NCBI GenBank assembly: GCA_001643675.2
Contig: LSRY02000003.1
Coordinates: 1,736,001-1,800,000 of the forward strand
From: Monocercomonoides exilis PA203
Taxonomy: Eukaryota > Protista > Preaxostyla
Direction: 5' to 3'
Length of the DNA: 64,000 nucleotides
The notes below the pieces were generated by a model, which worked only from the letters and a program-made list of their open reading frames with translations, was not told the origin of the DNA and ran no database searches. The stretch's first letter is position 1, and each line of letters starts with the position of its first letter. The translations under genes were made by a program, and so were the position numbers. Shown here piece after piece: positions 8,922 through 63,054 of the stretch.

Positions 8922-9508
8922 TGCGTATTATCTTCAAAATTCGTTAAAAGAATTTTTGATAAAAACATTGTTTTGCATTATATCCACCAAAAAGGGGAAA
9001 AAAGAAAAAAAACATCATATGAGACATCAACAACAAGAAAACAAATGTTTTCAGTTATAGGAATGGAAAACAAATAAAAGACTTACGTTTTCAGCAAACA
9101 ACGGTCAGTTCACAAAAGGGCTTGTCAAAAAAATCTTTGGATGCAAAAAAGAGTGAAAAATACATAAATAATGGTACTTCATATTTTTATTGGTGTTATC
9201 CTCTGACTGGTCATTTTTTAATTGAGATATCTATTTTTAACAAAGTGCAATGAAGTTATTTCAAAACATAAAACATTCAGAAACAAAAAGAAAAGAAAAT
9301 TTTTTTCTACACTCTTTTTTAATATATTTGAATTATAATAATTTACAGATTATAATTGTTAAAACAGAATTCCTTTTCTAACTTATCGTTTCAACAACCG
9401 TCATAAAAATGAACAAAGCTAGAAAAATCTAAAGACATTTCATTCAAACTGAGACCTGATTACAGTTAAAAAATTACTTTTGTTTTTGTAAAATCAAATT
9501 TCAGGTTC

Positions 9509-10718
9509 ACTTCAACCAACACCAATTCAATCCCCTCCTTCTCTCTTCACTCATCTCTCTCCATCCACTCATCCATCTTCAAACACACCCACAACCCCAT
9601 CGATGGTGCCATCCTCCCTTCCCTCAACAGCCCATCCACATCCATCTCTGCCTTCAACACCTCTTTCCTTCGCCAAACACGCTCTTCATCAAATGATCCT
9701 GTGAAATATATTGGATCTGAATCTCAACAAGAGAAATTAAAAAGATTGTCCTTTATTGAATTGAACAGCTATCTCTTTGAGTGGTGCGAATGGAATAATT
9801 CAAATGGAGGAAATGATTATGGAGGTGCTCTAAAAGTCAACTGCACGAATGCCAATCTCACAATCACTTCTTGTTCATTCAATAATTGTTCAACAAATGG
9901 ATCCAATGGTGGAGCGTTATACAGTTACTGTTTGCAAAATGAGAATATTGCAAAATCCAACTTTTCAAACTGTTCTGCTCCTCATGGAGGAGCAATTTGC
10001 ATTGATGGTCGGCAATCATCTTCCGTATATTCATTTTCTGATAACAGAGTGGAAAATTGTTCAATAACAGGAACCATTGGAACAGGATGGTATTTCTATA
10101 TTGAAAATTTTTCTTCAAACGGTCAATTCTTGTTCACCAAATGCAAGTGCTTCTCAAATTCTGGTGGTGATTCAACAGGTTCTCTCACATTCAATTGGCC
10201 TCCACAAAATAAACCAAGCCAGTTTTCAATCGTTGAGTGTCAGTTCATCAATAACAAATTGACAAGTTCATCAACTTCATGGGGAGGTGCTGCAATGTTT
10301 TTCAGAGACACATATTCCTGGATGAATGGAAATAAATTCATCACATTCTGCTTCTTCGATGGCAATACAGCAATAAATGGAAGGGGAAACGATGTGTTCT
10401 TTTACGGAAGTGATATCACCCAATCTCCATTCCAGCAATGCGGCTCAACAACCCTATCGAAAAGGGTGTATAATAATGGAACAGCTGAAAACGCTGAATA
10501 CAACAGTTGGCTTCCAATCATCAACCAGAACAAAATAGTTTCAAATGGTGGAAGTGATGCTGATGCCTGTGGCAAAGCACAGCAAAGCCCATGCGCCACA
10601 GTGGAGTATGCTCTCGGATGCATTGCTCCCTTCAGTGATGCCTCCCTCTCCCTTCTCGTCTCCTCTTTCACTCCCACAAACACTCTCACATTCTGCGCGG
10701 TCGATACAAAATTCACTG
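9509..10718 (+). pseudogene. Cassette 1: partial copy of the receptor N-terminal beta-helix domain
   Basis: Open frame 9470-10750 with no upstream ATG or signal peptide. Aligns to ~54820-56030 (HTHNPIDGA...FEWCEW...GGAL...FCFFDGNTA...AVDT). Confidence 0.85.
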
Positions 10719-13700
10719 TATGCGATATTATTTATCTAATTCTCATATAAATTTCTTCTAATCCTGATGGCTTTTCATTTCACTTTGCATTCATGAATTT
10801 TCATCTTCTTTTCAACAAGAGAACATATCATCACTTTTCTTTTGAGAAGTCTAACATCGGATCGCATTAAACATATTTCTTCGATATTTCCTCTTCGAAT
10901 TTCTCCTTTTCATCAAATGCAAATTCCATTTGTTGCTTTTAGGAATCATCTGCTTCCCTTTCTTCAATCATATTCGAAGGTTTTTCAATTATTAAATTTT
11001 ACTCAATTTTCTTATTTCAATGTGTTTGTATCCGATTCGCTCAACTATCTCTTTGAAATTTCTCTTCAAATAACACTTTTCTTCAAAATTGATTTTCCTC
11101 TTTATTTCATTTTCAACTATTTGTTGTGGTTTCGCTGCTGTGAAATCTACCGAATGCCATTTTTGGAACCCAGCCATTCCAAACAAAAATAGCCTCATTG
11201 TCCTTTCCTTTTCACTTCAGATGCTTCAGCCTCCTAATGAAAAAGTCAGAATCATTTTCTTGCTGATTGCTTGTCTTCTCATAAGCTTTTCTCTGCAAAA
11301 AATAGAATCGTTTCCGTTGACATATTATTTCAGCTGATATTCATTATTTGAATAAGTATTTCTTTGTATCTTTCCAAATCGCAACGATAGATGAGGTCTG
11401 GCACTGAATTCGATGGGAGTTGAACGAACTGAAAAAAATAGTATCATTTTTAATTCGTTCATCGAAGAAGGCGTTGAAGAAGAAAAGAAGGATCACGATT
11501 GTTGAAAGGAAGATAGATGCTGTGTGAATGTGCGAACGTATGAGGAAGAACGAGGTCAAAGAAGAAGAAGAAGAAATTGAAGTTAAAGAAGAAGAAGCAA
11601 ATTTTGAGCGAATAAGATTTTGTGTGTTTTTGGCCATGCGATTCATAACAGGCGTGCTTGTCGCTGAATAAACAGGTGAAGTGTGAGAAGGCGAATCTTG
11701 TGTTTGTAAATCAAGAAATGAGGAAGATGGTTGATTGAATGAAGGAGGATTATCAGAAGACGACGATGATGAAAAAGAAGGAAATGATGTGGAAGAAGAA
11801 GATGCAGTTGAGAAATGCGAAAACAGTCGAACAATATTTATGAAGAAGATAATGAGAACGCTTTGCGTGATGTTGTTGGTTGGACAAAACGTCTCGCTTG
11901 ATGCATTAACTTCACATTGGTTAGAAAAACTCAATCACAATATTTGTGACGAACAGATTGTGGAAATCAATCTTGCTGTATATTTCCAAAGGCAATTGAA
12001 TTTCATTTTGCGATTTCCTCTCCTTTCTCTTCAAAAATAGAAAATGTTGATTTTTCTCGATTTCCATTCCCTTCTTCCATTCAACCCCCAAAATCATCAG
12101 AAAATATCAATCCCCTCCTTTTCTTCACCTTTCCCTGTCTCTTCCAAAAAAACATTCTTCTCCTCTCATAAAAGTTACCCCCTTTTCATATGAACATTTC
12201 TCAATTTCCCTCTTCTTTCCAGCTTTTGCCCTCTTTTCCTTTTTTTCAAATTCCATTTCTCCAATCACCAATCAGTCCTCTTTCATCATCTCCAACCACT
12301 TCTCTACATATTTACTATATTATCTTCTCCAAATCTCCACCCACTCTTCCCCACCCCTTTGTCTCAGAATTTCTTTCATTCAAAAACACCTATTGAAATA
12401 TTAACATTCAAAAATATACTCAACTCTCACCCCCTGCTACAAATAATATTCTTCCATCTCTTCTCTGCCCCATATCCCTCATGTGCCTGGTGTTGATGAG
12501 ATAGACATCAAATATTTCTTTTGGTGATTGAGAATATTATTAAAGGAGATGATCATGCCAAAAACAGAAAAACACATCTGGACATCAATCGCACTGCGGG
12601 TTGGTTGAGAAGACCCCCCAGTGAGATACACGATGCATTTTGTGGAGATGCATTCCATGCCGCAACTTGACCATTCTGAGACTGAAATGAAGAGATTGAA
12701 TTTTTGGAATGATGATAGCTGTGGAAATGAGTGTATTTGACAAAATACAATCGATGCGCAGTTTGACATTTATTTATTTTTCTATATATGAATATTTATC
12801 TGTTGAATGTTTTTGTGTTGTTTTCAGGGCAGGAGGTGGAAATGAATGAAAATGAACGAAAGCGGGATATCTCATTGTGCAGGGTGGCTATGGAGTTGGG
12901 AGAGCGAATTCATATGGAAAGTTCCCAGGATGAAGGGATTGGGGAGGGAATTGGAGATGATATTTTCAGACGCAAAAACAGGACATTTTTCAATGATGAG
13001 AATGGAATTTGAGCACGATGCATAAATCTCACATTTTTCAGAAGGGAGGGAAATCGATGCATTTGATGGAGAAACAACTGATGGAAAGGATTATTTGCGA
13101 ATCAGATGATGAAACATTCGAAAAAGGAAGGAATAATGAAATTTTATTGAGGGGAAACAGGTGCCAATAGGATAACATAGAGTAATTGACTGAAAAATGT
13201 TTAGAAGGTTTGATATTGATATTTATTTTGAAGTGATTATTATTTTGTTTTAAGAATGCTGAAAGAATGAAGGATTAGATGGCTTTGAAGAAGAAAAGTG
13301 GGAAAGAAAAATAAAGAGAGAGATGAAATTCGATATTTCGAAGATGGCTTGCATTGTGCTTTGACAAATAATTATTTTTGAGGAAAGACGATTTTTTGTG
13401 AAATAAGGGGAAGTGAAAAAGGAAGAGATGGAATGAAAAAGAGATTGACGCGTGCTTTGTATTTTTTGTTGGAGAGAGAGAAAGAGATTGAGCTGAAAAT
13501 GAAAAAGGATTCAGAGGCTATTGTTTGCAAGAAGAAAAAGGAACATAAGAAGAGAATTTCAATGAATTTCTCCGTTGGTATTAATTGACACTCATCATCT
13601 CAATTTTCAACAATTAATCGTCTCATTCAATCCATTCATCATCATCATCTTCTTCTTCTTCTTCAGACACATCAACAACATTTCACACAGCATCTCCTTC

Positions 13701-14174
13701 TTTATCGTCATTCACTTCATCTGATTGGATTTCTTCGAATTCTGCGTTGAAATCAGAGAATAAGAGAGAAATGAAAAGGAAACAAGGAAATGTATTGATG
13801 AAGGAAAAAATAAGAAATAAAAATAAGAAAAAGAAAGAGAAAGAAATTCTTGAACTAGGGTTCATGCTTGATGGAAATGAGATTGAGAGGGTTGAAGAGA
13901 TTTTTGGATTAAAGAGAGAAGATGTTTCGAAGAGGAGATTCGAGTTGAATGTTGAATTTGGGAAGGAAAGTATTTGGATAAACGGAGGGTAATTTTGAGA
14001 AGCGATATAACAAACAAGGGTGAATGACAAGATTCAGGAAAAAAAACTATCAAATTTGAGAGAAAAGAAAGAATGCAAGGAGAGGAGAAAATAGAGAAAG
14101 GAAAAATAAGAGACGAAAGTTAGAAAGACATTTCATTGGAAGAATATGAAAAGAAAAAGCAAGAACCTGCCAAC

Positions 14175-15098
14175 ATACTCGGCGTTTTCAACTGTTCCTG
14201 CATTCCACACTCTTTCAGCTGGGGTTGTTGAGCCACAATTTTCAAACGGAGATTGAGTGATGGCATTACCATTGAAGAACACGTCGTTTCCTCTTCCATT
14301 TTTGGCAGTGTTTCCATCGAAGAAGCAGAATGTGATGAATCTAATTTCATTCATCCATGTGAAAGTTGCATCCAAATAGATGGCAGCACCTCCATAATAC
14401 GATGAACTTGTCAATTTGTTGTTTATGAATTGACACTCATTAACTAAAAATTGATTTGGCTTATTGGTTGGAGGATCATTGAATGTTAGAGAGCCAGCAG
14501 AATCACCACCAGAATTTGCGATACACCAACATTTGGAAAACAGGAATTGGCAAGTCGAAGTCATATTATTGAGCCAGAAATACCAACCAGTTCCACACCA
14601 ATCTGTTATTGAACAACTTTCCACTCTGTTTTCTGAGAATGTCCAAACAGAACTGGATTGCGGCCAGCCAATATAAGCAGCTCCTCCATGGGCAGCTGAG
14701 CAACTTGTGAAATTGGATTTTGCAATGTTGATATTCAGTAAATATACACAATATAATGCTCCACCGTATCCGTTACTTGAGCATTTGTTGAATGAACAGG
14801 AAGTGATTGTGAGATTGGCATTTGCACAATAAACATAAAGTGCACCGCCAGATGAAGATCCACCAGTTGAATCATTCCATTCGCACCACTCAAAGCGATA
14901 GCTATTCAAAGCAGTGAAGGACAATCTGCTTAATTTCTCTCTGTGAGTTTCATTTCCAATGTGTTCAACAGGAGCATTTGATGAAGAGCGTGTTTGGTGG
15001 AGGAAAGATGTGTTGAAGGCAGAAAGAGAAGTGGATGGGCTGTTGAGGTTGGGGAGGATGGCACCATCAATGGTGTTGTGAGTGTGGAGGAAGGTGGT
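14175..15098 (-). pseudogene. Cassette 2: partial copy of the receptor N-terminal domain
   Basis: Open frame 15098-14133, immediately preceded by TAA. Homology runs from TTFLHTHNTIDGA to GTVENAEY. Confidence 0.85.
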
Positions 15099-15840
15099 TT
15101 AATAGAAGTATTTCACTTGCAAGAAAAACACACAAAAATGAAAGAAGAAAACCAGAAAAAATGATTTCTCCGAAACTCTCTGTTTTTATTTGTTATCATT
15201 TGCCTTCACAATTTTCAACAATTAATTATCTCAATTGATTCACTTTTTCTTCTCCTTCTCCTTCTCCTTCTCCTTCAAACATATCAACAACATGTCACAC
15301 AATTTCTTCTTTGACTTCATCATTCACTTCCCAATTTTTAATTCTTCATCAATTGCTTCAGCTGCAGAGATGATAAGAGAAACGAAGAAGAAACGAAAAA
15401 ATTTTGCAGTTGAAGGAAAAACTTACAAATAAAATTTAGAGGAAGAAGAATGAGAGAAGAGGCGAAAAAGAAAGCAAATGAAGAGTCTATTTTGAAAGAG
15501 GATTCAGAAAGAAAATGGAATTGAAGGATTATGCAAATTTTTTGAATGAAAAGACGAAGATGGAAGGAGAGAAGATTCTGGTTGGAAGTTGAATTTGCGA
15601 AGAGAAGGAAACATCAACTTACAAAAAGAAATGTATTTGGATAGACAGAGGATAAATTTGAATAAAGAAATAACAAATAGGGGTAAATGACGAAATTCAG
15701 AAGAAATCAAAATATTTGAATAAACGACTAAAAGAAGGAATGAGAGAAGGGGAGATGATAGATAATGAAAAAAGAGATGGAAGCAGGAAAAGCATTTCAT
15801 TGGAGAATTTGGAACGAAAAGCTAGAATCGGTCATTTTTT

Positions 15841-16885
15841 CTCAGCGTTTTCAGCTTGTCCATTATTAAACACTCTTTCAGCTGGGGTTGTTGAGCCACA
15901 ATTTTCAAACGGAGATTGAGTGATGGAACTGCCACTGAAGAACACATCGTTTCCTCTGCCATTTGTGGCAGTGTTTCCATCGAAGAAACAGAATGTAATG
16001 AATTTAAACCCGCTCATCCAGGAATAAGCATTCCTAAAAAACATTGCAGCACCTCCCCATGAAGTTGATGAACTTGTCAATTTGTTGTTTATGAATTGGC
16101 AATCATTAACTAAAAATTGATTTGGTTTGTTTTGTGGAGGTGAATGAAATGTGAGAGAACCAGCAGAATCTCCACCAGAATTTGAGATGCACTTGCATTT
16201 GGAAAACAGGAATTGAGCACTTGTTGGTGTACTTCCCATGTTAAAATACCAACCAGTTCCACACCAATTTGTTATTGAACAATTTTCCACTCTATTTTCC
16301 GAGAATGTCCAAACAGAATTTGTTTGTGGATTGTATAAGTGTGCTGCACCTCCATGTGCAGCTGTGCAGCTTGTGAAATTAGATTTGGTGACATTTATAT
16401 TCAACAAATTTCCGCAGCACAACGCTCCAGCATGATCACCGGTTGAACAGTTATTGAATGAACAAGAAGTGATTGTGAGATTTGCGTTTGTGCAAACAAC
16501 ATAAAGTGCACCTCCATAGTTATTTCCACCAGTTGAATTATTCCATTCGCACCATTCGAAGAGATAGCTGTTCAATTCAGTAAAGGACAATCTACCAGGT
16601 TTCAATTTTTGAGTTTCGGATCCGTTATATTTTACAGGTTCATTTGGAGAAGATCGAGTTTGGTGGAGAAAAGAAGCATTGAAGGCAGAGAGAGAAGTGG
16701 ATGGGCAGTTGAGGGAAGGGAGAATTGCACCATCGATGGGGTTGTGGGTGTGTTTGAAGATGGATGAGTGGATGGAGAGAGATGAGTGAAGAGAGAAGGA
16801 GGGGATTGAATTGGTGTTGGTGTTGGGGGAAGTGGAAGTGGAAGAAGAGAAAGAGGTGGTTGAGATGAAAGGATTGAGTGAGTGG
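15841..16885 (-). pseudogene. Cassette 3: partial copy of the receptor N-terminal domain
   Basis: Stop-free frame from LNPFISTTS to GQAENAE. Contains a 138-nt block with only 2 mismatches to 55366-55503. Confidence 0.85.
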
Positions 16886-17571
16886 AGGGGAAGGAATTGA
16901 AGGATTTGATGAGGTTTGGAGAAGAGAAGAAAAGAAGAAAAAGAAATTGAAGAGAAGAACTGTTACATTAAAAAATCCAAAAAGAAAGGTGAATTTTGAA
17001 ATTGCTTAAAAGTTCAAAAATATCCAATCATTCTATCAAATATTATTGATTCTAAAACATATCAGTATCTGTATTTTCATCTATGAAATAACAAAAAAAT
17101 TGGAGAAAAATTTTTATCAATCAAACTCAATATTTTTTTTTTTTTTTTTTTTTGTGTATTCAAAACTTTTTAAAAAAAAAGTTATTTCTCTCTTTTTTTT
17201 CGAAATATACACCAAAAAAAAATACAAAGTCGAAAAACTTTCAAGTTAAGTCGAAAGCTCAAATTTTTCAAAATTTAAACAAGTTGACAAAAATCAATAA
17301 AAATCATAAAACATTTTTTTTATTTAAATATCAATGATACTGTTATTTCGACAATTTTTCATCTCTTTTCCTGCATATTTTTGTGCTTCCTTTTGTCCAA
17401 TTGCATATTAAAAAAACATGAGAGGAATTTTTACATATTTTTGTCTCATTTCAATTGAAAGCACACTTCTTCGCAGAAAATTCATTAAAGAAAATTTTTG
17501 ATTTTTTAACTTATTTAATGAAGGATTATGAATTCAACATTGGCTCTTTTTTTTGTGTGTTTTTTAATTTA

Positions 17572-25466: not shown

Positions 25467-25513
25467 CATAAATTTTGCTTTTCTTTTTAAAAGCTGATCG
25501 ATTTATTTTTCTC

Positions 25514-47500: not shown

Positions 47501-47950
47501 GAACTTCGAAAGCATGAATGTTTCACATTATGATCGCTTTTCTTATCAGATTTCACAGACATGTTTCTGAAGGCACAGTTTGAAATCTCTTCACTTTGGC
47601 TCTTTCCTGATAACAGGAAATAGTCTAAAGATGAGACAGTCAGATCTACAACGATGGAATTTCTCAAAATAACAGAATTTGAATCATCAGATGAAAATAT
47701 GAGGCTGGAAGGGCAAAGATTCTTTTGGGGGATCAAAGTCAAATTCACAGTGTTGATTGACCCACTTTGCAAAAGAAAAGGAGATGCTGATTTTTTGTGA
47801 AAAATGAAGGAATCCATCATTAGAGTTTATGCATCTGTAATCAGCACACACGTTGAAGAAGAATGTTAAATTGCAGAATTGTTTTGAGAGACCTGTTTGA
47901 AGTTGAAATGGAAGAATATGAAGGATAAAATGAAGAAGAAGAAGAAGAAG
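41525..47950 (-). pseudogene. Frameshifted paralogue of the beta-helix/TM receptor, truncated after the TM segment
   Basis: Consecutive ORFs with GG(A/G)-CxF and CGxxxxPC repeats, 'ICKWNGSLV', a TM segment and 'KDPKAFEMVTME' (cf. KDQKSFEMVTMD). No kinase-like part. Confidence 0.85.
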
Positions 47951-47989: not shown

Positions 47990-50900
47990 TTCAGCAACAT
48001 CAACAATGGGGCAACGAATCCGTGTTCTTCGATATTCTCTCTTCAGAACAGCTACGAAATCGAAGTTGTTGGGTGCACGTTCCAAACACTTGGCTCAGAA
48101 GGATGCAAAAAGGGAGGAGCGATGTCTTTTGAGCTGAAAGAGGCAGATGGACAGCTGAAGATGAGCAATGTTGGGGTGACGAACAGCGTCTGCAGCAGTT
48201 CTGAAGGATGTGGGGGAGGAATCTATTTGGCATGTGCAACAGACAACAATGACAAATGTTCATTTGCAGATAAAAGCATTGGAGGAGGCAAGGCACACCA
48301 GGGAAGAGATATGTATATTGTGGTGAATGATATGAGAAGGGGAGTGAATTCTGAGTTGTTTGTGTCTGTTCGACTTTCAAAGGAAAAGGAGGGTTTTTGT
48401 ATTTGAGCTTCTGCTATTCGATCTATCTGTTCTCTTTGTCTGACTTGGTGTTTTCTGAGAATGAAGCACTTAAAGGCAGAAATGTGTTCATATTGAGCTA
48501 GGATTTGAATTCTTCAGTTGTCATTGAAAGGTTGATGTTTGATTGGACTGAATGGAAGAATACAACAGCTTTCTTTGGGGCAGACAAATTGAACTTTACA
48601 GAAGGCATTTCTTTGGAAAAGTTGCTGTTTGATCACATAGACACTTCTGTTGTTGTGTCGTCGAGTGGAAGAGACATCCACGGGTGCGGATCAGAAACGG
48701 AGCCTTGTATGTCATTTTGGGAAGGAATGAGGCATTTCAGAGAAGGAATTCAGTTCAGAGAAATCAAAACCAACACAAGTGCTGCCATTTCAGACGAGTG
48801 GGACCTTTCAAACAGCTCAATAAGTTCAGTTGTTCCTTCTTCTCCTGGTTATTCTTCTTCCTCCTCTTCCTCTGATGAGCCTTCCTCAGATGAATGCACA
48901 ATCATTGTGGGAAAAGCTATTCAATCTCTTTCTGAGCCTTCTGAGGCTGCGCTCACAAACAAGCTTATACTCACATTCACATCCATCAACTTCTGCCTGC
49001 CTTCATTTTTCGAAACACCACAAAAGGAACTTCTTTTCACTGAGACAGGAACAGCCACGCTTAACAAATGCTCCTTTGCGATGCAGACAGCAGAAGAAGG
49101 CATTGCGTTTGTGCTTTTCCATGTTTCGTCTGGAACACTTTCGATTGAATAGTCTAAAATGGTCGAGCTCTCCTTTGCGACATCAGCCATCCGACTTGCC
49201 GCGCCGGCTGCACATTTTGTGGCGAGTGCGTTTTCTGTTGATGTTCTGAATTTTGCAGATGGATAGTTTATTTCTGTGGGCGATGCAGAAGAGAAGGGGG
49301 ATGAGGAATCAGTGTTATCAAAGAATGGCAAAGAAACGAAAGCGAGCAAAGATGCGAGCGAAATCAGACTGGAGAATCTTCAGTGGCATCTCATCCGTAG
49401 CGCAAATACGAAGGCGTTGACCATTGCCAATGAGAACTCGCTGTCTGTGATGGACTTCAGCGAGTTGGCCTTTGACAGAGAAAATGCGATCTTCGGGGTG
49501 GACTAAGAAAACGAGGAGCCGATTGATTTGGTGCCATTTATTGTGTTCTACAAGTCGGAGCGGATATTTGTGTCAGGAGAGAAGGGGAAGAACGAGAAGG
49601 ACTGTGGGCAAAGGGAAGACCCGTGTGAGACACTCAGCGAGGCTGTGCGGCATCTGAACGACGAGCCGTACAAGAACGTGCTGGTGGTGAAGAAGGAAGC
49701 TGTTTCAGCAGAGACAGCCATTTCATCAGCGACAGTGCAGACAGTCGGAGGCAGCCCAGCTGTTTTCGAGTTCAACTGCGAAATCGCTCAGACGGATGGA
49801 AGTGCGGATTGTGTTGTGTCTTCGTCAGGGGAATGTCAAATTATGGGGATGGACATCGTCTTTGGCCCCAGCTTCGCTTCGGCGCATCGCTCTGTCTTTG
49901 GCGTGAGGAGCGGAAATCTGACGATCAGCGACTGCGCAATCAAGTCAGAAGAGCTGGTGTAGTTGGCAAACACTTTTTTTTTTTTTGCGTTAAGAGTTAT
50001 TGTTTGTGTTTGAGCAATATTTCGTTCTCAGCCATCCGCTTGCAGGCATCGAGGCAGCAGCCATCAGCAGAAGCATTTGGAGCAAAGCAATTTGCTCAGT
50101 CTTCTTTTGCTTTGTCTTTGTTAGAGCAAGAAGCAGGGAATTCGTTCATTGAGGCCTGCTCAGGTGCTGCTGTGAAGTTGATTGATGTCTGCTTCAAAGA
50201 GCTATCTTTATTTGTCGTGTCGGGCGATGCCTCGCAGTCGGCTCATGTTATCAAGTGCGAGTTGTCTTCTCTGACAGTCTGTTGGCTGAGAATAGAAGAT
50301 TGCTCTGTTTCTTTCATAACACCTTCCGATTCTTCATCTTCATCATTATCTTCATCATCGTCCATTTCTTCTTCTTCTCATTCTCCCAATTCCTTTGAGT
50401 CATCTGCGAACTCTCTCATTTCTGTGTCTGGTGGCAGCTTGGCTGTGCTGGCAGACATTTGCATAGAGCATGTTTTAGAGTGCTGTGGTGTGCTCTCTGC
50501 AGAAAGCTGGTGCAAAATGAAAGTGAAGCAAATCAATGTCTCTTCGCTGTCTTCGCATTCATCTGTCTTTGCAGCAGAAATGTCATCATCAATTTTTATG
50601 AGAGAAGTGAAATTTAGAAAAGTGGTTGTGGAAAAAGGAAGCTAATTTGCCCTTCTGCCTTCTCCTCATCTTCGGAATTGTAAATCAGATAAATTTGAGT
50701 GTAATTCTAATTTTAACAAAGCGCACAATGAAGACATCGAAAAGTTATTTTTGTTGGTTTTATCAGAAATTAGTGATGTTCAGCTGAAGCATTCGGAAGG
50801 AGCAGCTGTGAAGGCAGCCAGTTGGAACAGCCGCATTCTGATTGACTCGTGTGTGTTCAGCAATATCAGCAGTCAGCGCGAAAGAGGAAGCTATTTGGAT

Positions 50901-51752
50901 TTGACTTCGTGCATTAATGTGACAATTGAAAATAGTTCATTTTTTGGCACTTTAAACGATAAAAATTACGATATACAGAATGTAAATGCAAAAGTCAACA
51001 AAAACAACGAAATCGGATGGCAAATAGATGGCATCTGCAAATGGAACAGCTCTTCAGTCAACTTTATAGAAAGTACAGTTTATGTGAACGAAACTTCATT
51101 TGAGAACTTCTCTCAAGGAGCCATTTCTCTGTCTAACTCGACTGTTACGATAGAAATGGGGATGTTTCAGAACAACAATCCATTTGTTTCCGGCTATCCT
51201 TCTCTTCGACGCAACATTTTGTGTTCAGATGGAAGCACGTTGAATGTGAAGAGTGTGAAAGGAGGAGATGGAATGAAGGATAACGCCTCATTTTGGATGT
51301 TGAGCGAAGGTTGCGCTCTCAAAGGAATTCTTTCTGAAGTGTCAACTCCTTTATTTATCTCCATTATTGAAGAAGTGAAGACAACGAAAGAGGAAAATGT
51401 GATGAAAATAATATGTTTGGGACATCTTTTGATGCGTTGCAATCTGTCGATGCAAATAATATTCAAAAGAGGAGATGAAAAAGAAGTTTTGAAGGAGTTT
51501 AGCAAAGAGGATTATATTAATGAAAATGAAATTTGTTACGATATTGACTTGACATTATATGAATGGGACGAAGAAGATGCAGAAATGTATGAGTTTGTTT
51601 TATTTGGAGATGAAACAGCGTCTTCAACAGAGAATTTTATTATGAAGAACAAAAGAAGTCCTCAAACAAAAGGAGATGAAGAAATAGATAAAAGAGTTAA
51701 AGGAGAAAAGAGCGTGCTGAAAGGAGAAACAGAAAAAGAAGATCAAAGATAA
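47990..51752 (+). pseudogene. Decayed internal fragment of another receptor paralogue
   Basis: Broken ORFs with CGSETEPC, CGQREDPC, ICKWNSSSV and YPSLRRNILCS matching the 54-63 kb protein. Confidence 0.8.
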
Positions 51753-53701: not shown

Positions 53702-53971
53702 TTAAAAAATTAACCTTCCAGTGTGACTCTTGTATGGGATTGGTTGGTTGCAAGGGGTGTAATTCCAGCAATTCTGTACTTGAGTGCACAAGAATTTTTA
53801 AGGGAAAAATTTGATTGATATGGAGAGTATAATAACGTAATAAAAAATAAAATATTAAGAAATAAATAAAAATGATAATATAAAATGGAAATTGATATGG
53901 GAATAGTGATTAGAACCATTAATGATAATGGTTATTTGCGAGGAGATATGAAATTTCACTGCAGTTTGAAA

Positions 53972-56900
53972 ATGATTAGGATCACAGTATTAGCTCAAAT
54001 ACTCGCTGCATTCCTCACCATAAATCTCGTTCATGGAGAGAACATCGCAAACAGCATCATCAGAGGCGCTCACACAGACAAGGTGGAACATGCATCGGGA
54101 AATCACATCTGTGGTGCTCAGACAAGCTTCGCCCTCATCAACACCTCCTTGTGTGTGACCCATCTCAACATCATCCCCCTCGCTGGTTGCCCACTCCTCA
54201 CTGCCCAACACCACTCAACTGCCTCCATCTCCTCCTCCACTTGCACCATCCACCCACTTTCCCTCACCAACAACAACTACTACCAACAATGCCCCCTCTT
54301 CCTCTCTGCCCATGCCTCCCTCGCCCTCACAAACTTCTCCCTCACCACCCACCAACCTGCCATCTTCTCCTTCCCCCTCTTCTCCACCCCAAACAATCTC
54401 CTCCCACATGCCCACTCCCCAATCCCTGCCTCCTTCTCCATCTCCCACTCCTCTTTCTCCTCCTTCATCTCCCTCATCCAGCCTTTCCTTTTTTTCTCCT
54501 TCTTCCCTCTCTTCCCCATCCCCTTCTCCATCTCCATCCCTTTCCCCTTCTCCTTCATCTTCCTCATCCTCATCCTCATCCTCTTCTTTTTTCTTCTCCT
54601 TCCCCTTCCCTTTCCCCTTCCATTTCCTCTTCCCCTTCCCCTCTCCATATCCATCACCAATCCCATCCCCACCTCCAAATCCACCTCAATCTCCATCTCT
54701 CAAACACCCTCTTCTCCAACATCTCATCTCCCCAATCCCCTCTATCACTTCCATCCCTTCCCTCCCACACTCACTCAATCCATTCACCTCAACCACCTCT
54801 TCCTCTTCTTCCACTTCCACCAACACCAACACCAATTCAATCCCCTCCTTCTCCCTTCACTCATCCTCTCCATCCACTCAACCATCTTCAAACACACCCA
54901 CAACCCCATCGATGGTGCCATTCTCCCCAACCTCAACAGCCCTCCACTTCTCTCTCTGCCTTCAACACTTCTTTTCTTCACCAAACACGATCTTCACCAA
55001 ATGCTGCTGTTGTACATGTTGGAACTGAATCTCAAAGAGCGAAACCTGGAAGACTGGATTCTTTTGATCTGAACAGCCACAAATTTGAATGGTGCGAATG
55101 GAAAGATACAACTGGTGGAGCTGTCCATGGAGGAGCGCTTTATGTTTATTGTGCAAATGCAAACCTCACAGTCACTTCTTGTTCGTTCAACAATTGTTCG
55201 GCAAAAGGACACAATGGTGGAGCATTAGATTGCAATAGTTTGTTAAAAATTGATATCACAAAATCCAATTTCACAAGTTGCTCGGCTGCTCATGGAGGAG
55301 CAGTCCATGCTACAAGTCCACGATCAAATTCTGTTTGGACATTCTCAGAAAACAGAGTGGAAAGTTGTTCAATAACAAATTGGTGTGGAACTGGTTGGTA
55401 TTTTAACATGGGAAGTACACCAACAAGCGCTCAATTCCTGTTTTCCAAATGCAAGTGCATCTCAAATTCTGGTGGTGATTCTGCTGGTTCTCTCACATTT
55501 CATTGGCCTCCACAAAATAAACCAAATCAATTTTTGGTTAATGATTGCCAATTCATAAATAATAAATTGACAAGTGCATCATCTTCACGCGGAGGAGCTG
55601 CGCTGTGTTGCACAAACACCTTCACTTGGATGAGTGGAGTAAAATTCATCACATTCTGTTTCTTCGATGGAAACACTGCCACAAATGGAAGAGGAAATGA
55701 CGTGTTCTTCAGTGGTAATGCCATCACCCAATCCCCATTTGAGAATTGTGGCTCAACAACTCCAACAAAAAGAGTGTTTAATAATGGAACAGCAGACAAT
55801 GAAACTTTCAATGGCTGGCTCCCCCTCATCGCCCAGAACAAAATCGTTGCCAGCAATGGAACTGATGCTGATGCCTGTGGCAGACCCCAACAGACCCCAT
55901 GCGCCACCATCGAGTATGCTCTCACTGGCTTCGTTTCCCTCCTCCACGACGCCTCCCTCACCCTCCTCAGTTCAACATTTGTTCCAACTCAAACACTCAC
56001 CTTCAGCGCGGTTGATACCATAATCACTGGAAATGGCACAACTGCCACCATCATCGCCTCCAGTGGCATTCCCCAACCACAAAACTCACATTCACACTCA
56101 TCACAATCAACATCATCATTTTCTTCATTTTCATCGTCATATTCATCATATTCATCTGCATCTTCTTCACCAGATCCATCTGCCTCGTCTGCCCTCTTCC
56201 AACAGACACAGGGCTCCCTCACAGTCTCTGCCCTTGCCATCGCCCACAACTCCTCAAATCAAATCACTCCCATCCTCTTCCACCTCTCCGGTAACTCCCC
56301 TTCCCTCAATCTCAACACAACCACCATCACCGGAACAACCTCCATAACAATAAAAACTCCCCTCTTCTTCCTCACTGCTGGCTCCCTCGCCCTCAACCAC
56401 ACAGCAATCACCAGTCTCACCCTCAGCAGCCAAAGCATCTTCCACCTCACCTCCCTCACAAATCCCCTCACCCTCAACTCCTCCAACATCACCCACATCA
56501 CCTCCACTGCCGCCCCCACCAGCTGTGTCCTCTCCTCTGCCACCTCCCCTGCCCTCTCCCTCTCCCTCGCCAACTGCACCATCACCAACATCAACTCAGC
56601 TCCGCAAAACCAACAGACTGCCACCAATGGCGGGTGCATCTCATTCGCCTCATCTTCCACTGCCAACTCCTTTTCAGTGAGTGACACAGCCTTCTCCACC
56701 TGCTCTGTGAGCGAGGATACAAGTTCTGGAGGAAGAGGCGGCGCTCTCATGATCGAGTACAACGATGATTCAGAAGTGTCATCCACAACCTTTTCCATCA
56801 CCAATATCGTGTTTTCAGCCAACAAGGCCAGCGTCGGAAGAGATGTGTATTTTGTGTGTGAATCCCTTGTCGCTTCTGTGAAAGAGCCCTTGTTCGCCTT

Positions 56901-59900
56901 CATGGGAAACATCACTCAGAAAGACAACTCGGCTGTTGGACATGACAGAACAGAAGCATTTTGCGATTGGGATGTCGATTTGTTCATATTCTTCGATGGA
57001 TTCTTTGATGATATAATTTATGTTGATGGAACATCTGGAATGGATAAGGAATATTGTGGGATAGAGAAGGCGCCATGTTACAACGTAAACTACGGAATCG
57101 GGCATTTGAAAAATACACAGAATACAAAAAAGGAGATTATTGTTATTTCGAATTCATTGATGGCGGGATGTGTGGATGTGGGGGGATTGTGTGTGAAAGC
57201 AAAAGAGGAGGAAATGATAAGAATCGAATGCCAAAGAGAAGTGAGTGGATCTGAAGAATGCATTCTTAAATCATCATCACTCACTGAAATGAAGTTCATT
57301 GGGATTATTATTCCATCGAGTTTTAGCAGAACAATCACATCGGTGATTGAATCAAACACTCAAAATGGCAAGTTGCACATGAATAACTGTGAGATGAGTG
57401 TGGCAGGAGGGAATGGAAGCACAATTACATTTTTCTTAATCAAATCGACAGGAATGATGGTTAAGCTGGAGTTTGTCACGATTTCAGATGTGAAATCAAC
57501 AGTCCCGTTATTTTCGTTTACTCTTTCATCATCAAATATGAACGATCAGGAATACAAGGTGAAACTTTTAAATTGTTCACTGCAAAGATTGGAGATTGAT
57601 AGCACAACAGCAGTTGATGAAAAGGCATCAGTGTTTGGAGAGAGTGTTGGAGTTGGTATGGTGATAAATGGAAGTACAATTGATGGGGCATTATCAGAGA
57701 AGAGCAAAGAAGGAGGAGCATTGAAGATAGCGTTGAACGCAGGAGGGTTTATGAATATTCAAGAGAGCTCATTTGTTGGATGTGTTTGTGAGAATGAAAA
57801 CGATGGAGGAAAAGGAGGAGGGATATATCTGGATTGCAGTTCAAATGAAGTCGGATTTCAACTTTCATCGATATCATTTTCTGGATGCTCAGCAACAGTT
57901 GGGAAGAACATGTTTGCGAAGAGTGGGAATCTGGTGAACAGTGTGAAGACAGAGCGTTTTGCATTTGATTACTCAGGATATTCTAATGATGGAAATGCAT
58001 TTGTTGGAGAAGATGGGATTTATGGAGAAATGGATCTTCGAGTATTTCTTGTTTCTTTGAAGTGGATAGAGGTGTCTGTGTCGACTGGTGGGCATGACAC
58101 GTTGGGATGCGGAATTGAAAAATTCCCATGCAAAACGATGAAAAGTGGAATTGACCATATTGACAGAAGTGGGACAGAAGGAAAGAGGAAAGTAACTGTG
58201 AAAGATGGAGGTACAATCGAAGATATTTATTCTTTCACAGATGAACTTGTGATTGATGGGTGTGTGAATAATGGAGATATCGATAAACGCATTCCTATTC
58301 ATTTTGAAGAGACAATCAAAGGGAATTCTGCATCAACTTCATCTGTTATTTCATCAACTCAGCCACTTAGCTTGTTATCTTTGAAGCTGCAGATTCCAAA
58401 TCAATTTGTACCAAGCAAGAATTCTTTGATCTTATCGAGTAGGATTCTCCAACTCGAAAACTGTTTATTTGAAATTCATTCAGCAGCAAATACTGTTCAA
58501 TATACATTGATATCCACAACCACTGGAAGTTGCACATTGAAGGGATGCAGTTTGGCAGATTGTTCGTTTATCATATCTCCATTGGTGATGGCTTCTTCTG
58601 TTTTGTTTGAAAACAACAGCTTTTCAAGTATTGCAAACACTGGAAGCGGCGAAGGAGGTGTTGCAAGAGTGATTTTGAAAGAGAATGAAGAATTTGTTAT
58701 CAAATCAACAAATGTATCATCTTGTTCGCTTTCATCAAGCAATGGAAAAGGAGGATTCTTGTATCTGAATTGCGAAAATTGTTTGAATGAAACACCATTC
58801 CTTTTGGAAGGTGTAACATTTGAGAACAACAATGCAACCATAGGAAAGAATATGTTCATTTTGGGAAAGGATTTCAACATTTCTGTCACAAACGATACTT
58901 TCAAATTTAATTACTTATCAATGAAAGATGATGACAATTTATTTGTTGGAAGCGACGATTTTCATCAAAAAAAGGATTTATTCATGTTTCTGATTCCATA
59001 CAGCTCATTTGAGATATTTATCTCATTCGAAGGATTTGATGTGGCGCGTTGTGGAAGTGAGGAAGAACCGTGCAAAACGATGTGGAAAGGGATGAAAAAT
59101 ATGGAAACAGGAGATGATACGAAAACAATTCAAATATCAGGATCAACAATTATTCAAGATTCATTCAGCATGTCCAATTATCAGATCAAAAAGGCTTCAT
59201 CAATGGGAGAAGAGAATGTGAAAGCAATATTGAATTTTGAAAAGGCAATTGGAAGTCAGCTGGAATATTTCATGGTGAATGAAATTCATCTTGAATTATC
59301 AAACATTCAACTTCAACTAAAATTAGGATTTGACAATTCGGCCAAAACCATTATTTCGAATATAAATGGAGATTTGGTGATAACTGGATGCTCATTCCAT
59401 TCAGAAGCAGGAATAAACAATGGATTTGATTGTGTGTTTGTGGATGCGATTGGAGGAAGTGTAGAAGTGAATGATTTGTCGATTGAATCATCCAATGTTG
59501 GAAATAGCATTTTTGCAATAAACAATGCTGGAGTTTCTTGCCATTTTGTGAATGTTCGAGTGAAATTGTTGAATGAAAGCGGAGGATGCCTTCTTCTGAT
59601 CAAAGGATCTGAATCAACAACAAAGATTAATGAAGGAGGTGAAGAAGGAACAAATATTGAGATTGAGAAATCATCATTTTCAGGAATAAAGAGAAGTGAC
59701 AATGGGCCAAGTATTTTGGAGTCGAAGAGTGAGAAAAAGATTTGTTTGGTTGTAAAGGAGAGCAACATCACAGAAGATAAGGCAGAAAATAGTGAAAAAG
59801 GAGGGGCGATATTCTTCACATTGGGATCGTCTGGATCAATGAATATGATTGACTCCAAAATCACAAATTGCAATTGCAGTATTAGTTCGGGGAAAGGAGG

Positions 59901-62900
59901 AGGGGTGTATCTAGTAACAAAGGAAAGAGGAGATTTGAATTTTTCATTTGTGGGAATGAAATTCAGTGACAACGGTGCAAGTGTTGGAAAAGATATTTTC
60001 ATTGAATGTTATAACATCACATCTCAGATCAATGAAACCCAATTTCGGTTTGATCTTCGAGAAAATCATTATTCACGAATAAATGCGATATATGGAATTG
60101 ATGAATGCCAGTATACAGTTAACACAGATCTTATTAGATTTGTGACGATTCATCAGAGTGACACAATTGTTGTGAGTGGTACGAATGGTTCTAATGATAG
60201 ACAATGTGGAACAAACGATCTTCCTTGTGATTCAATTAATCATGGACTAATGCATCTGACTTCGGAATATGTGAGTCTGTTGTATGTTGACACCAACAGT
60301 GTGATTGGTGAAGAGATAAATTTGGAAGAAATGAGTTTGAGTTCAAAGAGCAGAGAAATGTGTGAAGTTGAAGTGGAAACAGATATTAGAGAAACAAGAG
60401 GGGCATTGATGGCAACAACTGGAACAGTTTCATTGTTGAGAGTGAACTTTGTGTTTGATCCAAATTTCATCTCTTCGCATGAATCATTAATATCACCGGA
60501 GGGAGGGATTCTTGAAATCATGAATTGTTCTTTTTCGTCAAAACTATCGAATGAAGATGGAAATATTGTGAATGCAAATATTCCATTTAACATTATTAAA
60601 ATGGATAAAGGAGAATTACAACTTGATGGATGTGCAATATCAAATCTCATTCTTCATGAATCTGCATTGTATCTTTCATCTCCACTTCCATCAGTTATTT
60701 ATTTGTTTGAGGTATCAAATATAACGGTTGAAACATCTTTGATAGATATTAATGAATGCGGACAATTAACAATTAAGGATTTCAATACAGAAAATATAAC
60801 AGCTGAAGGAAATGAAGAATCACTGATATCTTGCTTGTCAATGAAAAAGACAATGCAATTAGCAAATTGCACAATAGGTGAAGTCAGTTCAAAGACCAAA
60901 AAAGGGAAATTGATGAAATTGGAGAATTGTTTGGATGTGAAAATGGATAGTTGCATTTTTGATGGAAGTTTAAAGGAAAGAAATGAGAAGCAGTTGAATA
61001 TTGAAGAAGAGATGTGCAGATGGGATGGATCTCTTGTGGATGTTGTGAAGAGTTCCATGGTGATGAAAGTTTCAACAATCACAAATTCACCAGAAGGTGG
61101 AATAACAATGAGAGGAGGAAATGTGATTATTGAGAAAGGAGAATTCATTGACAACAATCCATCGATTGAAACGTATCCTTCATTGAGAAGGAATGTTATT
61201 TGTTCAGATTCAGGAACATTGAATGTGATGAGTTTGAAAGGAGGAGATGGAGTTTTGCCAAACACATCACTTTGGATGTTGAATGAGGGATGCGGTTTTG
61301 AAGGGATTGTCTCTGAGAGGGATTCATCGTTCTTCATTCCAGTTCTGGAGAGTGTAGAAACAAAAGAAGAGGCAAGTCGAATGAAATTGACATTCAAAGG
61401 GATGCTTCTTGTTCCATGCAATCTGTCATTCTCACTTGTGAAGAGGAAAGGTGAAGAGAAAGAAATCGAAAAATATGATTTTGATTCAAATGGGTTTTTA
61501 TCAGAGAAAGAAGCTGAAGGAAGCGTTGCGAAAGATCTAATCAGCGGATGTGGAAATGAAATAGAAGTGAGTGTGCATATTTTATTCGGAGTTAATGATT
61601 ATCCTTCATCAACAAATCCATTTATTCTGAAGAATTCTAGCGTAACTCCACCAAAAGATGATGATAAAAAAACTGAAGGAGGAAATAAGAATAACAATGG
61701 AAACATTTCAACTTGGCCAATTATCGTTATTATCATCTTTGCTTTGTTATTCTTGATCGTTTTAATCGTGTCCATCATTGTAACCCTCAGATGGAGAAAA
61801 TCAAAGAGAAGAACTGAAGAATTGGAAGAGATAGTCAATGATACTGTGAAAAAAGATCAAAAATCTTTTGAAATGGTAACTATGGATATGTCTCCAGATG
61901 ATCAATGGAAAAGTTCTGGTAGAGATTCAGACAGATTCAACAAAACAAAACAAAAAATGAGAATATCTCCGAAAAAAATGGAACATTCTGAATCTTCGGA
62001 ATATCTTTTAGCTGAAAGTGGATCAACTGAATATATTCTGGGTCATGATTCTGACAAAATACCAAATTGGGCTTTAGAGAAAGTGGAAGAAGATGAGGAT
62101 GATGAAGAACAAGAAATCAAAAAAAGATCTCCTTCTCCTTCAAAATCTTCAATTTCTTCTTCTGACACAGACTCATCCTTTGTACGCATGGAGGATATGT
62201 GTCCAACTACTTCATCAATGTCAAATCTGGTAGATGCAATGGCTTGCTCTTCTCCTCATGAAAAGTTAATTGTTGACTTGAGAGATTCGTTGTTCATGCT
62301 GCTTCACGGAAGAAATGAGAAAAAGGAGATGGCAATTGGAACATTACAGGAGAGAGAAATCACTGGATCTCAAGTATTGTTCTGGGTTGCAAATGGTGCA
62401 CTTCATTCATTTGAAGAACATGAAATGCCTCTTCCTTCCTTACCAAATTTGAGTCCACACATTGTTCTTTTCTCAGAGCACATGGTTATTTGCATTGCAC
62501 TCCATTCAGACTGTTCATCGGACTCAGACACTTCATCCGTTTCCTCATCTACTATCGCAACATCTTCTTCTGAATGCTCAACTGCTAATGAAGTTAAAAA
62601 ATCTTCACAACCTCCTTCATCAGCTTTTGAGGATGAAGATGATGATTTGAAAGAATGCCTCAGATGGAAAGCACCTGAGCTGATGATCAACAAGAAAATG
62701 GGAGCAACAAAGAAATCTGTAGTGTTTTCTATTGGAATGATGCTGTGGGAATTTTTGAGTTTACAAATTCCATTTAGTGAATATGAGTCTGAGACAGCAG
62801 GACAAAAATTGGTTAATGGAGAAAGACCAGACCTTAACAAAATCGCTGAATCCTCTTTATGCGAATTGTGTGGATGTTGTTTAAGTAGTGTTCCATCTGC

Positions 62901-63054
62901 ACGACCTGCAATCGTAACTGTGAAACGTGAACTTATTAAAAAGTTCCCACCTGGTGCTGCTATCATCACAGCTTCAGATGCCACAATGTATGAATACCTA
63001 AGTGAAGAAGAAGAAGATAAAGCGAGTTACGCTTTGGAAGAAAGTTTAGTGTGA
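53972..63054 (+). CDS. ~3000-aa type I membrane receptor: signal peptide, Cys-rich beta-helix (Pmp/pectin-lyase-like) ectodomain, TM, TKL-derived pseudokinase; apparent frameshifts at 54490-54945
   Basis: Signal-like MIRITVLAQILAAFLTINLVHG. GGA(L/I)...FxxN and CGxxxxPC repeats. TM at ~61714-61790. LRWKAPE...KSVVFSIGMMLWE...IPF...GERP...RP. The frame is open from ~54945 to the TGA. Confidence 0.85.

Follow-up and report, generated by a model that had tools for sequence, protein, structure and literature searches.

Short exact tracts shared with many paralogs point to segmental gene conversion in a giant receptor-like gene family of Monocercomonoides exilis

The 64-kb window of the genome of the gut protist M. 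exilis PA203 (the whole stretch of DNA analyzed here, to which all positions refer) belongs to an assembly of 101 contigs and 82.3 Mb in total and carries a giant receptor-like gene on the forward strand (53969..63054; hereafter, the focal gene), as well as three truncated copies of its N-terminal domain. We identified the focal gene from its start, domain, transmembrane segment, Pfam match and relatives as a near-full-length member of a giant receptor/tyrosine-kinase-like family. Its start at 53969 resembles a signal peptide and leads into a CT-rich low-complexity linker, after which come the variable N-terminal all-beta domain and long extracellular repeats; a transmembrane segment and an apparently degenerate kinase C-lobe complete the gene. 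The match to PF07714 (E=4.5e-10) covers profile positions 160-258 only, hence the suggestion that the kinase may be degenerate. All of the protein relatives found were M. exilis MONOS_ proteins, and most of the long ones (n=48) carry PF07714. With its transmembrane segment, C-terminal kinase domain and PTK/TKL relatives, the predicted protein has the features of the tyrosine-kinase-like receptors, which form the largest gene family of M. exilis (PMC6759080).

The region used for all of the recombination tests is the variable N-terminal domain of the focal gene (54890..55800, forward strand), which we aligned to 64 further unique copies from the family. The AF2 model has a core with pLDDT values of 80-95, in which triplets of short strands recur every 25-32 residues. 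A Pfam search with the domain returned no match and a Foldseek search against the PDB returned nothing at E<=0.001; the top match (E=0.013, TM 0.31) and the other weak ones were mostly to beta-helix proteins. Within the domain, one base that is present in all of the other aligned copies is missing from the focal gene (54941..54942, forward strand). The resulting frame break at 54941 separates the frame of the signal peptide (ORF 53885-55072) from the main ORF (54151-63054), which spans 8.9 kb (2967 codons) and is unbroken over more than 10 of the tract junctions described below. The break may be a pseudogenising deletion or, alternatively, an indel left uncorrected in the assembly; multicopy regions are under-polished, according to the genome paper (PMC8767320).

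The three truncated copies of the domain (cassettes 1-3) lie on the same chromosome, 38-45 kb from the focal gene. Cassette 1 (9515..10718, forward strand) is truncated at both ends and has a frame open from ~9470 to 10750. Cassettes 2 (14192..15099) and 3 (15848..16902) are on the reverse strand, in tandem with a period of 1666 nt, and both have open frames. Despite the absence of a start codon and a signal peptide and the loss of the 3' end, all three cassettes have kept their frames open. Considered as spliced genes, they had no family homology downstream, no signal-peptide exon upstream and no Pfam match in the neighboring ORFs. The apparently non-coding sequence 3' of cassette 1 (10719..12300, forward strand; C1-type architecture) occupies the same place after the domain at 15 or more of the other sampled loci, and the sequence 3' of cassette 2 (12722..14191, reverse strand; C2-type) follows a domain cut at ~55800 (focal-gene position) in at least 10 others. 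A version of the latter (71% identical) also lies 3' of cassette 3. Altogether, truncated architectures like those of the cassettes were present at 25 or more of the sampled loci. In each architecture, 75-80% of the copies have kept the domain frame open, and dN/dS is 0.18-0.30 even when cassettes are compared with each other.

An initial annotation of this DNA had proposed that the focal gene and the cassettes form a patchwork, with a block at 55366-55503 (forward strand) nearly identical to cassette 3 and flanks that differ strongly. Both observations hold. The block matches cassette 3 (16281-16144, reverse strand) at 136 of 138 nucleotides, and the two mismatches (55428 and 55476) are synonymous and in third codon positions. 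Identity between the two sequences is 93-98% over 55339-55548 and 60-80% on either side. Between the focal gene and cassette 3, synonymous divergence (dS) falls from 0.69 and 0.73 in the two flanks to 0.07 within the block (Fisher p=2.5e-5), a tenfold drop that protein constraint alone does not explain. Further, a GENECONV-style permutation test with the four sequences identified the fragment containing the block (55317-55557) as globally significant, with all sites (p<=2e-4) and with third positions (0.0016). The exact partners in the block are elsewhere: the focal gene is identical (157/157 nt) to L043, a partial copy 1.55 Mb away (C25:~237 kb), and cassette 3 is identical (111/111 nt) to a different locus, L011.

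The other proposed links had mixed outcomes. Cassettes 1 and 3 indeed share an identical block, the LTSSSTSWGGAAMFF block, as an exact run of 50 nt (10253-10302 = 16086-16037), and they also have a 5' stretch in common, with 87% identity over 380 nt. An exact 57-nt run between cassettes 2 and 3 (14263-14207 = 15926-15870) had escaped the earlier reading. The peptides GGALYVYCANANL and GNAITQSPFENC, which had been taken to link the focal gene to cassette 2, are common to both sequences but fail as evidence of exchange, because their dS values (0.60 and 0.67) are those of the background for this pair (0.63) and, thus, reflect constraint and provide no evidence of conversion. The longest exact runs had global permutation p values of 0.001 (gene and cassette 3), 0.003 (cassettes 2 and 3), 0.009 (cassettes 1 and 3) and 0.010 (gene and cassette 2). 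The run of the last pair (49 nt) lies where 14 members of the family are at least 97% identical, and is attributed to conservation. The permutation tests detected no significant tract in common between the focal gene and cassettes 1 or 2. With four sequences, PHI was significant for all sites (p=0.02) but not for third positions alone (p=0.2); the quartet-informative sites split 35/24/12 and clustered weakly (p=0.09).

The four sequences are part of a much larger set. The genome contains at least 500 candidate copies of the N-terminal domain (345-623 first-look candidates per query), and the best relative of each of the four is just 82-88% identical. We sampled 65 of these copies for the family alignment, which left the best relatives of cassette 2 and most copies outside. 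Exact matches of 60 nt or longer to other sampled loci cover 83% of the focal gene between 53900 and 57530, a tiling that, like the apparent enrichment of partners on the same contig (odds ratio 3.9), is inflated because the sampled loci were chosen for their resemblance to the four focal sequences. The tiles, all given on the forward strand, include exact tracts of 150-201 nt at places where family identity is ~75-79%, and begin with an exact 201-nt tract (54970..55170; family median identity, 78%) shared with L002 and L003 (C25:1553042 and its inverted twin). A 69-nt tract with L014 and L024 (55165..55233; family median, 74%) leads to 150 nt identical to L023 (55229..55378; C25:2001426), 104 nt of which are also identical to L030 (C48), and then to the 157-nt tract with L043 (55379..55535), which spans most of the block described above. 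The 199 nt that follow (55529..55727) are identical to L014, and 191 nt of them to L018. Because L014 and L018 are identical to each other up to 55760, the 3' boundary of this tract belongs to the focal gene; its nesting inside a longer L014-L018 tract hints that the focal gene may have been the recipient. Farther downstream are two abutting exact tracts (55798..56117), with L009 (55798-55925) and L011 (55921-56117), and a 767-nt tract with L009 (56764..57530) that reaches the end of the compared stretch, even though L009 is just 81% identical in the domain. On a larger scale, identity is 95.5% to L002 in the 5' region of the focal gene and 96% to L009 in the region downstream. All of the long tracts of the focal gene have their partners at loci between 160 kb and 1.5 Mb distant, or on different contigs. 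Queries spanning the junctions found no other locus above 91% identity (55120-55280) or 96% (55470-55590); hence, the combination of tracts in the focal gene is unique.

Exact tracts also connect the cassettes to other loci. Cassette 1 shares 216 nt with L065 (9730-9945) and 119 nt with L071 (10334-10452), and cassette 3 shares 115 nt with L018 (16538-16424) and 111 nt with L011 (16282-16172). For cassette 2, the longest exact tracts with other sampled copies were just 50-67 nt. The tracts cross architectures, both from the cassettes (cassette 1 with L065 and L071, cassette 3 with L011) and from the focal gene (with L002, L014, L018 and L023). In the preferred reading, truncated copies such as the cassettes trade tracts with full-length genes, which makes them members of one pool.

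Recombination was also strongly supported by the statistics of the family alignment. PHI with the 65 copies was highly significant for all sites (z=-8.6) and for third codon positions (z=-4.2), with p<0.001 in both cases. Exact tracts of 100-224 nt were found in pairs of copies that are 75-88% identical overall, at places where the family median identity is 71-82%; in a column-shuffle null, the longest exact tract never exceeded 65 nt. Most tracts are internal patches, with divergent sequence resuming on both sides within 50-220 nt. No mismatches were present in 20 of the 27 long tracts, which fits a very high ratio of conversion to mutation but would fit an assembly artefact too. The codon-position test of mismatches inside strict tracts had 8 sites only; a looser tract definition, too inclusive to delimit true tracts, placed 55% of them in third positions versus a background of 48%. 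Tracts of at least 70 nt have a median length of ~95 nt, and the longest reach 224 nt within the domain and, downstream of it, 767 nt. These lengths overlap the size of a beta-solenoid rung, as the initial annotation had suggested, but the tract ends are scattered and show no periodicity (46 unique ends), which leaves the proposed rung scale with a match in size only.

Segment trees supported the earlier contention that no single tree fits, as supported sister groups switch from one segment to the next. The focal gene groups with L002 in segment S1 (the two rows are identical there; with L026, 90/92), with L023, L002 and L030 in S2 (97/85), and with L014 and L018 in S4 (100/96). In S1, cassette 1 groups with L065 (100/99) and cassette 3 with L038 (99/96). 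AU topology tests rejected the grouping of the focal gene with L014 and of cassette 1 with cassette 3 in segment S3 (p=0.021 and 0.025, respectively), though these tests are underpowered (segments of 135-200 columns), the clades were picked after seeing the data and several other AU tests were non-significant.

Several processes could leave such patterns. Protein constraint, or convergence on beta-solenoid rungs, would account for shared blocks without recombination and agrees with the background dS of GGALYVYCANANL and GNAITQSPFENC and with the 49-nt run of the focal gene and cassette 2 in a stretch conserved in 14 copies. It is contradicted, however, by the synonymous-site results (the tenfold drop in dS between the focal gene and cassette 3 and the third-position PHI) and by exact tracts of 150-216 nt that include all synonymous sites where the family median is 71-79%, and its probability is practically negligible. 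Chimeras produced by reciprocal or unequal crossing-over and segmental duplication, instead of short non-reciprocal conversion, would match the switch of large-scale partners from L002 to L009 and the 767-nt exact tract, and active duplication is evident from identical gene pairs in inverted orientation and from the tandem cassettes. Yet the tracts are mostly internal, with divergence again on both sides, and would each need two exchanges, at many loci and on different contigs and orientations; we consider crossing-over decidedly unlikely. Very unlikely, too, is a dedicated system, comparable to loci of directed antigenic variation, in which the three silent cassettes (9.5-17 kb) serve as the donor archive for one expressed gene (54-63 kb). 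Their missing starts and signal peptides, cut 3' ends and open frames would suit such a role, as would their location 38-45 kb away on the same chromosome and the significant fragment that cassette 3 has in common with the focal gene. But cassettes 1 and 2 have no such tract, and in the cassette 3 block it is L043 that equals the focal gene exactly and L011 that equals cassette 3. The long tracts of the focal gene lead to distant loci or other contigs, the same truncated architectures recur at 25 or more sampled loci, tracts connect all architectures and the putative expressed gene carries a frame break. Hundreds of full-length members also leave no single expression site. A closed system, with three cassettes that feed one gene, is not supported, given the 500 or more candidate copies and the exact partners at other loci, and we found no evidence for a programmed cassette system of the vlsE, pilS, VSG or ves kind, neither as a single expression site nor as privileged silent donors.

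An origin in the assembly was also considered, in which a blended long-read consensus would be snapped piecewise to the best-mapping short reads of paralogs during Pilon polishing, generating exact tiles of roughly read length. The assembly underwent ten Pilon rounds and its authors issued their own caveat about multicopy regions (PMC8767320). The mostly exact tiles of 100-220 nt and the isolated one-base indel in the focal gene, shared by no other copy, are also as expected from such an artefact. Against it, the background identity of the tiles (~72-79%) is too low for reads from paralogs to map, the 2967-codon ORF is intact over all of the junctions, and some tracts are slightly aged, such as the one between the focal gene and cassette 3 with its two synonymous differences. 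Moreover, pair-specific exact tracts of 90-172 aa, for which the next-best relative is 73-94% identical, occur in proteins that are identical in the EukProt/GiardiaDB (454-era) and NCBI (ONT-era) sets. Of the sampled loci, those that map to stored proteins are L040, L017, L064 and L046, none of which covers a key tract of the window. We regard an artefact as unlikely. Nonetheless, the loci of this family are those most exposed to polishing errors, and read-level validation is needed before the tracts are put to evolutionary use.

The best explanation, as the initial annotation had it, is segmental short-tract gene conversion, on the basis of the synonymous sites and the third-position PHI (z=-4.2). 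Tracts of pair-specific near-identity with divergent flanks, identical at synonymous sites as well and accompanied by conflicting segment trees, are present at many loci and on several contigs. From these sequence patterns, we propose, with a probability of roughly 0.75, that ectopic (interlocus) gene conversion is ongoing over the whole family, truncated copies included. The four sequences would then be a small sample of one very large pool of paralogs, the receptor/tyrosine-kinase-like family of M. exilis, in which short stretches may be repeatedly copied from locus to locus as homologous-recombination repair uses a paralog as template. Repeated copying would make each copy a mosaic, in which tracts of ~50-770 nt identical to one paralog would adjoin tracts of another against a background of ~75-80% identity. 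M. exilis has homologous-recombination repair and lacks non-homologous end joining (PMC6759080); without end joining, this cell must repair breaks by copying. We infer the enzymatic route, the direction of transfer, the evolutionary (non-programmed) time scale and any benefit for receptor diversification. A faster version, in which the abutting exact tiles would be products of break-driven diversification in growing cells and not evolutionary relics, and the truncated but readable copies of the domain would supply the receptor family with donor sequence, is conceivable though improbable; by analogy, it could be functionally akin to mosaic VSG or ves1 in a non-parasitic metamonad with homologous recombination only.

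If the tracts are real, trees of this family at the scale of whole genes are meaningless and truncated copies are not dismissible as inert pseudogenes. The family is not only the largest in M. exilis but also a large share of the "unclassified repeats" of its genome. The M. exilis genome-analysis paper that we searched for the term gene conversion had zero occurrences of it. Interlocus gene conversion is known from other multigene families, among them MHC, immunoglobulin V genes with pseudogene donors and the palindromes of the Y chromosome. Its general marks are pair-specific tracts of identity, conflicting segment trees and pseudogenes that serve as sequence reservoirs. M. exilis does not differ from these cases in principle; the organism and the family are new and, though the proposed process is ordinary gene conversion, its density here is unusually high.

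Real tracts would also provide a non-parasitic comparison for the mosaic surface-antigen families of trypanosomes, Babesia and Plasmodium. In Babesia bovis, short tracts from many ves1 members, truncated ones included, are patched into a surface-protein gene to form mosaics, as proposed for M. exilis, but conversion is into a defined transcribed locus that changes in clonal lines over weeks (PMC7485966). In contrast, M. exilis is regarded as a commensal, its tracts run between all kinds of copies and they are seen in the present state of one genome. The mosaic VSG genes of Trypanosoma brucei are likewise tiled by exact segments from several donors, with the participation of pseudogenes and in a process ascribed to DNA-break repair (PMC3708902; PMC13233330). 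VSG mosaics are, however, built in a telomeric expression site during infection, whereas those of M. exilis occupy internal loci of chromosomes and are fixed in the reference genome. The var genes of Plasmodium falciparum also form in-frame chimeras in a large surface-receptor family, by mitotic recombination between paralogs on the same or different chromosomes (PMC4270465; PMC6532940). Exchange among the ~60 var genes mainly takes the form of single crossovers or of long tracts at blocks of shared identity, whereas the M. exilis family has hundreds of copies and a large number of short internal patches.

We identified in the window three partial copies (cassettes) of the region 54748-56029 of the gene, a giant receptor/tyrosine-kinase-like member at 53969..63054 (+) with a variable N-terminal domain. 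By blastn, cassette 1 (9515-10718, plus strand) is 76% identical to the gene, cassette 2 (15099-14192, minus strand) 79% and cassette 3 (16902-15848, minus strand) 84%. The initial annotation had read the patchwork of matches among these four sequences as segmental gene conversion, citing among other matches a block shared by the gene (55366-55503) and cassette 3 (16281-16144). The two sequences are indeed identical at 136 of 138 nt and both differences are synonymous. The 138-nt core has a synonymous divergence (Nei-Gojobori) of 0.07, against 0.18 for the wider 55339-55548 and 0.69 and 0.73 for the flanks (Fisher p=2.5e-5). Thus, the synonymous-site comparison proposed in the annotation ran contrary to constraint alone, and we ruled out protein conservation as the cause of the block.

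A GENECONV-like permutation of the four sequences returned 55317-55557 of the gene-cassette 3 pair as the sole globally significant fragment (p<=2e-4; 0.0016 at third positions). The longest exact runs of the gene-cassette 3, cassette 2-cassette 3, cassette 1-cassette 3 and gene-cassette 2 pairs gave global permutation p values of 0.001-0.01. PHI on the four sequences alone gave 0.02 for all sites and 0.2 for third positions, and their quartet sites split 35/24/12. The block reported between cassettes 1 and 3 is real (an exact 50-nt run, 10253-10302 = 16086-16037), and cassettes 2 and 3 share an exact run of 57 nt that had been overlooked. Two peptides proposed to link the gene to cassette 2 reflect conservation rather than exchange, with synonymous divergences of 0.60 and 0.67 against a pair background of 0.63. 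Nor is cassette 3 a privileged donor for the gene, because each has an exact partner elsewhere among the sampled genomic copies of the domain: L043, a partial copy 1.55 Mb away, for the gene (157/157 nt, 55379-55535) and L011 for cassette 3 (111/111 nt). Close versions of the block are carried by several copies (the gene, cassette 3, L008, L011, L019, L061 and L043).

Exact tracts extend well beyond this block. Within the gene they lie at 54970-55170 (201 nt, L002), 55165-55233 (69 nt, L014/L024), 55229-55378 (150 nt, L023), 55529-55727 (199 nt with L014, 191 nt with L018), 55798-55925 (128 nt, L009), 55921-56117 (197 nt, L011) and 56764-57530 (767 nt, L009). Exact matches of at least 60 nt to other sampled loci cover 83% of 53900-57530; family median identity within the domain tracts is 74-79%, and a column-shuffle null never gave exact runs above 65 nt. 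Cassette 1 has exact tracts in common with L065 (216 nt) and L071 (119 nt), cassette 3 with L018 (115 nt) and L011 (111 nt), and unrelated pairs show the same behavior (L014-L018, 224 nt; L004-L020, 206 nt; L010-L016, 188 nt). Tracts of at least 80 nt occurred in 2.7% of same-contig pairs and 0.7% of others (Fisher p=4e-4), in a sample biased toward the window's contig (C25) and with pairs that are not independent. Tract ends are spread along the domain with no rung periodicity.

Recombination was also evident in an alignment of 65 unique copies over 54890-55800 of the gene (PHI z=-8.6 for all sites and -4.2 for third positions, both p<0.001). The best relative of each focal sequence is only 82-88% identical, the gene being that of cassette 3 (83-84%). 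In sliding nearest-neighbor profiles and mismatch plots, zero-difference blocks give way abruptly to stretches with 3-7 differences per 10 nt. Segment trees changed partners accordingly: over 54970-55170 the gene grouped with L002, cassette 1 with L065 (100/99) and cassette 3 with L038 (99/96), but the gene moved to L023/L002/L030 over 55229-55364 (97/85) and to L014/L018 over 55529-55727 (100/96); AU tests on such short segments were partly informative only. The best matches elsewhere in the genome were <=91% for a junction query at 55120-55280 and <=96% for 55470-55590, and the gene's combination of tracts is therefore unique in the genome. Several copies are 97% identical across 55320-55440, making the junction there ambiguous. 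Together, the synonymous-site drop, family-wide PHI, exact tracts and changing tree partners favor segmental gene conversion as the best explanation.

Could polishing of the assembly have produced the tracts? The genome containing the window (C25:1736001-1800000) has 82,301,135 bases in 101 contigs; the published PA203 Nanopore assembly (101 contigs, ~82.3 Mb, N50 1,379,369) was built with Canu, Nanopolish and ten Pilon rounds (PMC8767320). Such repeated Pilon polishing of multicopy loci would fit an artefact of this kind, and so would the finding that most tracts are perfectly exact (20/27). We consider it improbable, however, because reads from paralogs would not map at a background identity as low as 72-79%, no junction interrupts the 8.9-kb ORF and the gene-cassette 3 block retains two synonymous differences. 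Furthermore, protein pairs with an overall identity of ~70% have exact stretches of 90-172 aa in common that are specific to the pair; the cross-check set comprised 41 family proteins with identical sequence in NCBI (ONT-era) and EukProt, whose GiardiaDB-style records we took to be 454-era annotation.

All three cassettes lack the signal-peptide region and the gene sequence downstream of the domain, and their reading frames stay open. Such architectures are not peculiar to the window: at least 15 other sampled loci carry the sequence 3' of cassette 1 in the same place after the domain, at least 10 have a domain truncated where cassette 2 is and followed by the downstream sequence of that cassette, and full-length continuation was seen in at least 22. 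Within each architecture, 75-80% of copies keep an open domain frame, and dN/dS is 0.18-0.30 in every pair, cassette-cassette pairs included. Short architectures with a signal-peptide region and N-terminal domain, and then an end, were found at L016, L018, L041, L042 (cut near 55800 and followed by cassette 2-like sequence) and L064. Some are annotated as genes (L064 is P0049, MONOS_18537, 479 aa), and rather than being dead fragments, these short architectures may code for secreted proteins made up of the domain only.

Protein searches recovered only M. exilis MONOS_ proteins as relatives, identifying a eukaryotic multigene family and rejecting a bacterial cassette locus. The gene is a member of the tyrosine-kinase-like family, the largest in M. 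exilis (332 tyrosine kinases are predicted, of which 320 belong to the TKL group; PMC6759080). First-look searches gave 345-623 domain candidates genome-wide, depending on the query. Two distant members (22-45% aa identity to the gene) lie head to head at 41558-47820 (-) and 48095-51752 (+). At the end of the main ORF (54151-63054, plus strand, 2967 codons) lie a transmembrane segment and a partial match to the kinase profile PF07714 (positions 160-258 only). This match, within 61120-63051 (+), covers only the C-lobe, no obvious catalytic-loop motifs were seen upstream of it, and the tail may be a pseudokinase. The ATG at 53969, which is signal-peptide-like and in frame with ORF 53885-55072, is the probable start of the gene. 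A base missing at 54941, present in every other aligned copy (~60), separates this frame from the main ORF; the gap may be genuine or a long-read indel left uncorrected. Most annotated family proteins (P0003-P0048) begin at internal methionines (domain residues ~100-230), and the true 5' ends of the family are probably absent from the published models.

The patches are internal, with divergent sequence resuming on both sides, which points to non-reciprocal copying of short tracts more than to crossovers. The gene also changes partner on a larger scale, its 5' region resembling L002 (95.5%) and its downstream region L009 (96%). M. exilis reportedly lacks non-homologous end joining and has a fairly complete homologous-recombination set (PMC6759080), making repair of breaks from paralogous templates a reasonable route. 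The signal peptide and CT-rich low-complexity linker (53948-54747) are 93-96% identical to several paralogs whose variable domains are only ~84% identical to the gene's; this much better conserved flank could supply recombination homology. Many family copies form sequence-identical inverted pairs a few kb apart (C25:1547343-1548608/1553042-1554307; C25:1584126/1587819, also duplicated on C98:3924; C25:1630408/1634811; C25:2049900/2064600). In its AF2 model the domain is all-beta and strand triplets recur every 25-32 residues; Foldseek similarities, though weak, were mostly to parallel beta-helix proteins, the likely fold. Elsewhere in the window, at 24543-27266, a 935-nt inverted repeat (99% complementary) surrounds an 854-nt core, with 10-nt tandem repeats in each arm at 25053-25162 and 26645-26764; the whole resembles a transposon bounded by long terminal inverted repeats. 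Long ORFs of 483 and 973 aa at 2728-7996 (-) and 3000-7700 had no Pfam match; GAA/GAG-type (minus-strand TTC/CTC) repeats predominate in that stretch.

A programmed cassette system is unlikely, its defining features being absent where tested. The term "gene conversion" does not occur in the M. exilis genome-analysis paper (PMC6759080). Overall, the pattern matches ectopic gene conversion in surface-protein families and comes closest to the segmental gene conversion of ves1, mosaic VSGs and mitotic recombination among var genes. The process is a known one, and M. exilis provides a real, dense instance of it in an organism and family that are both new.
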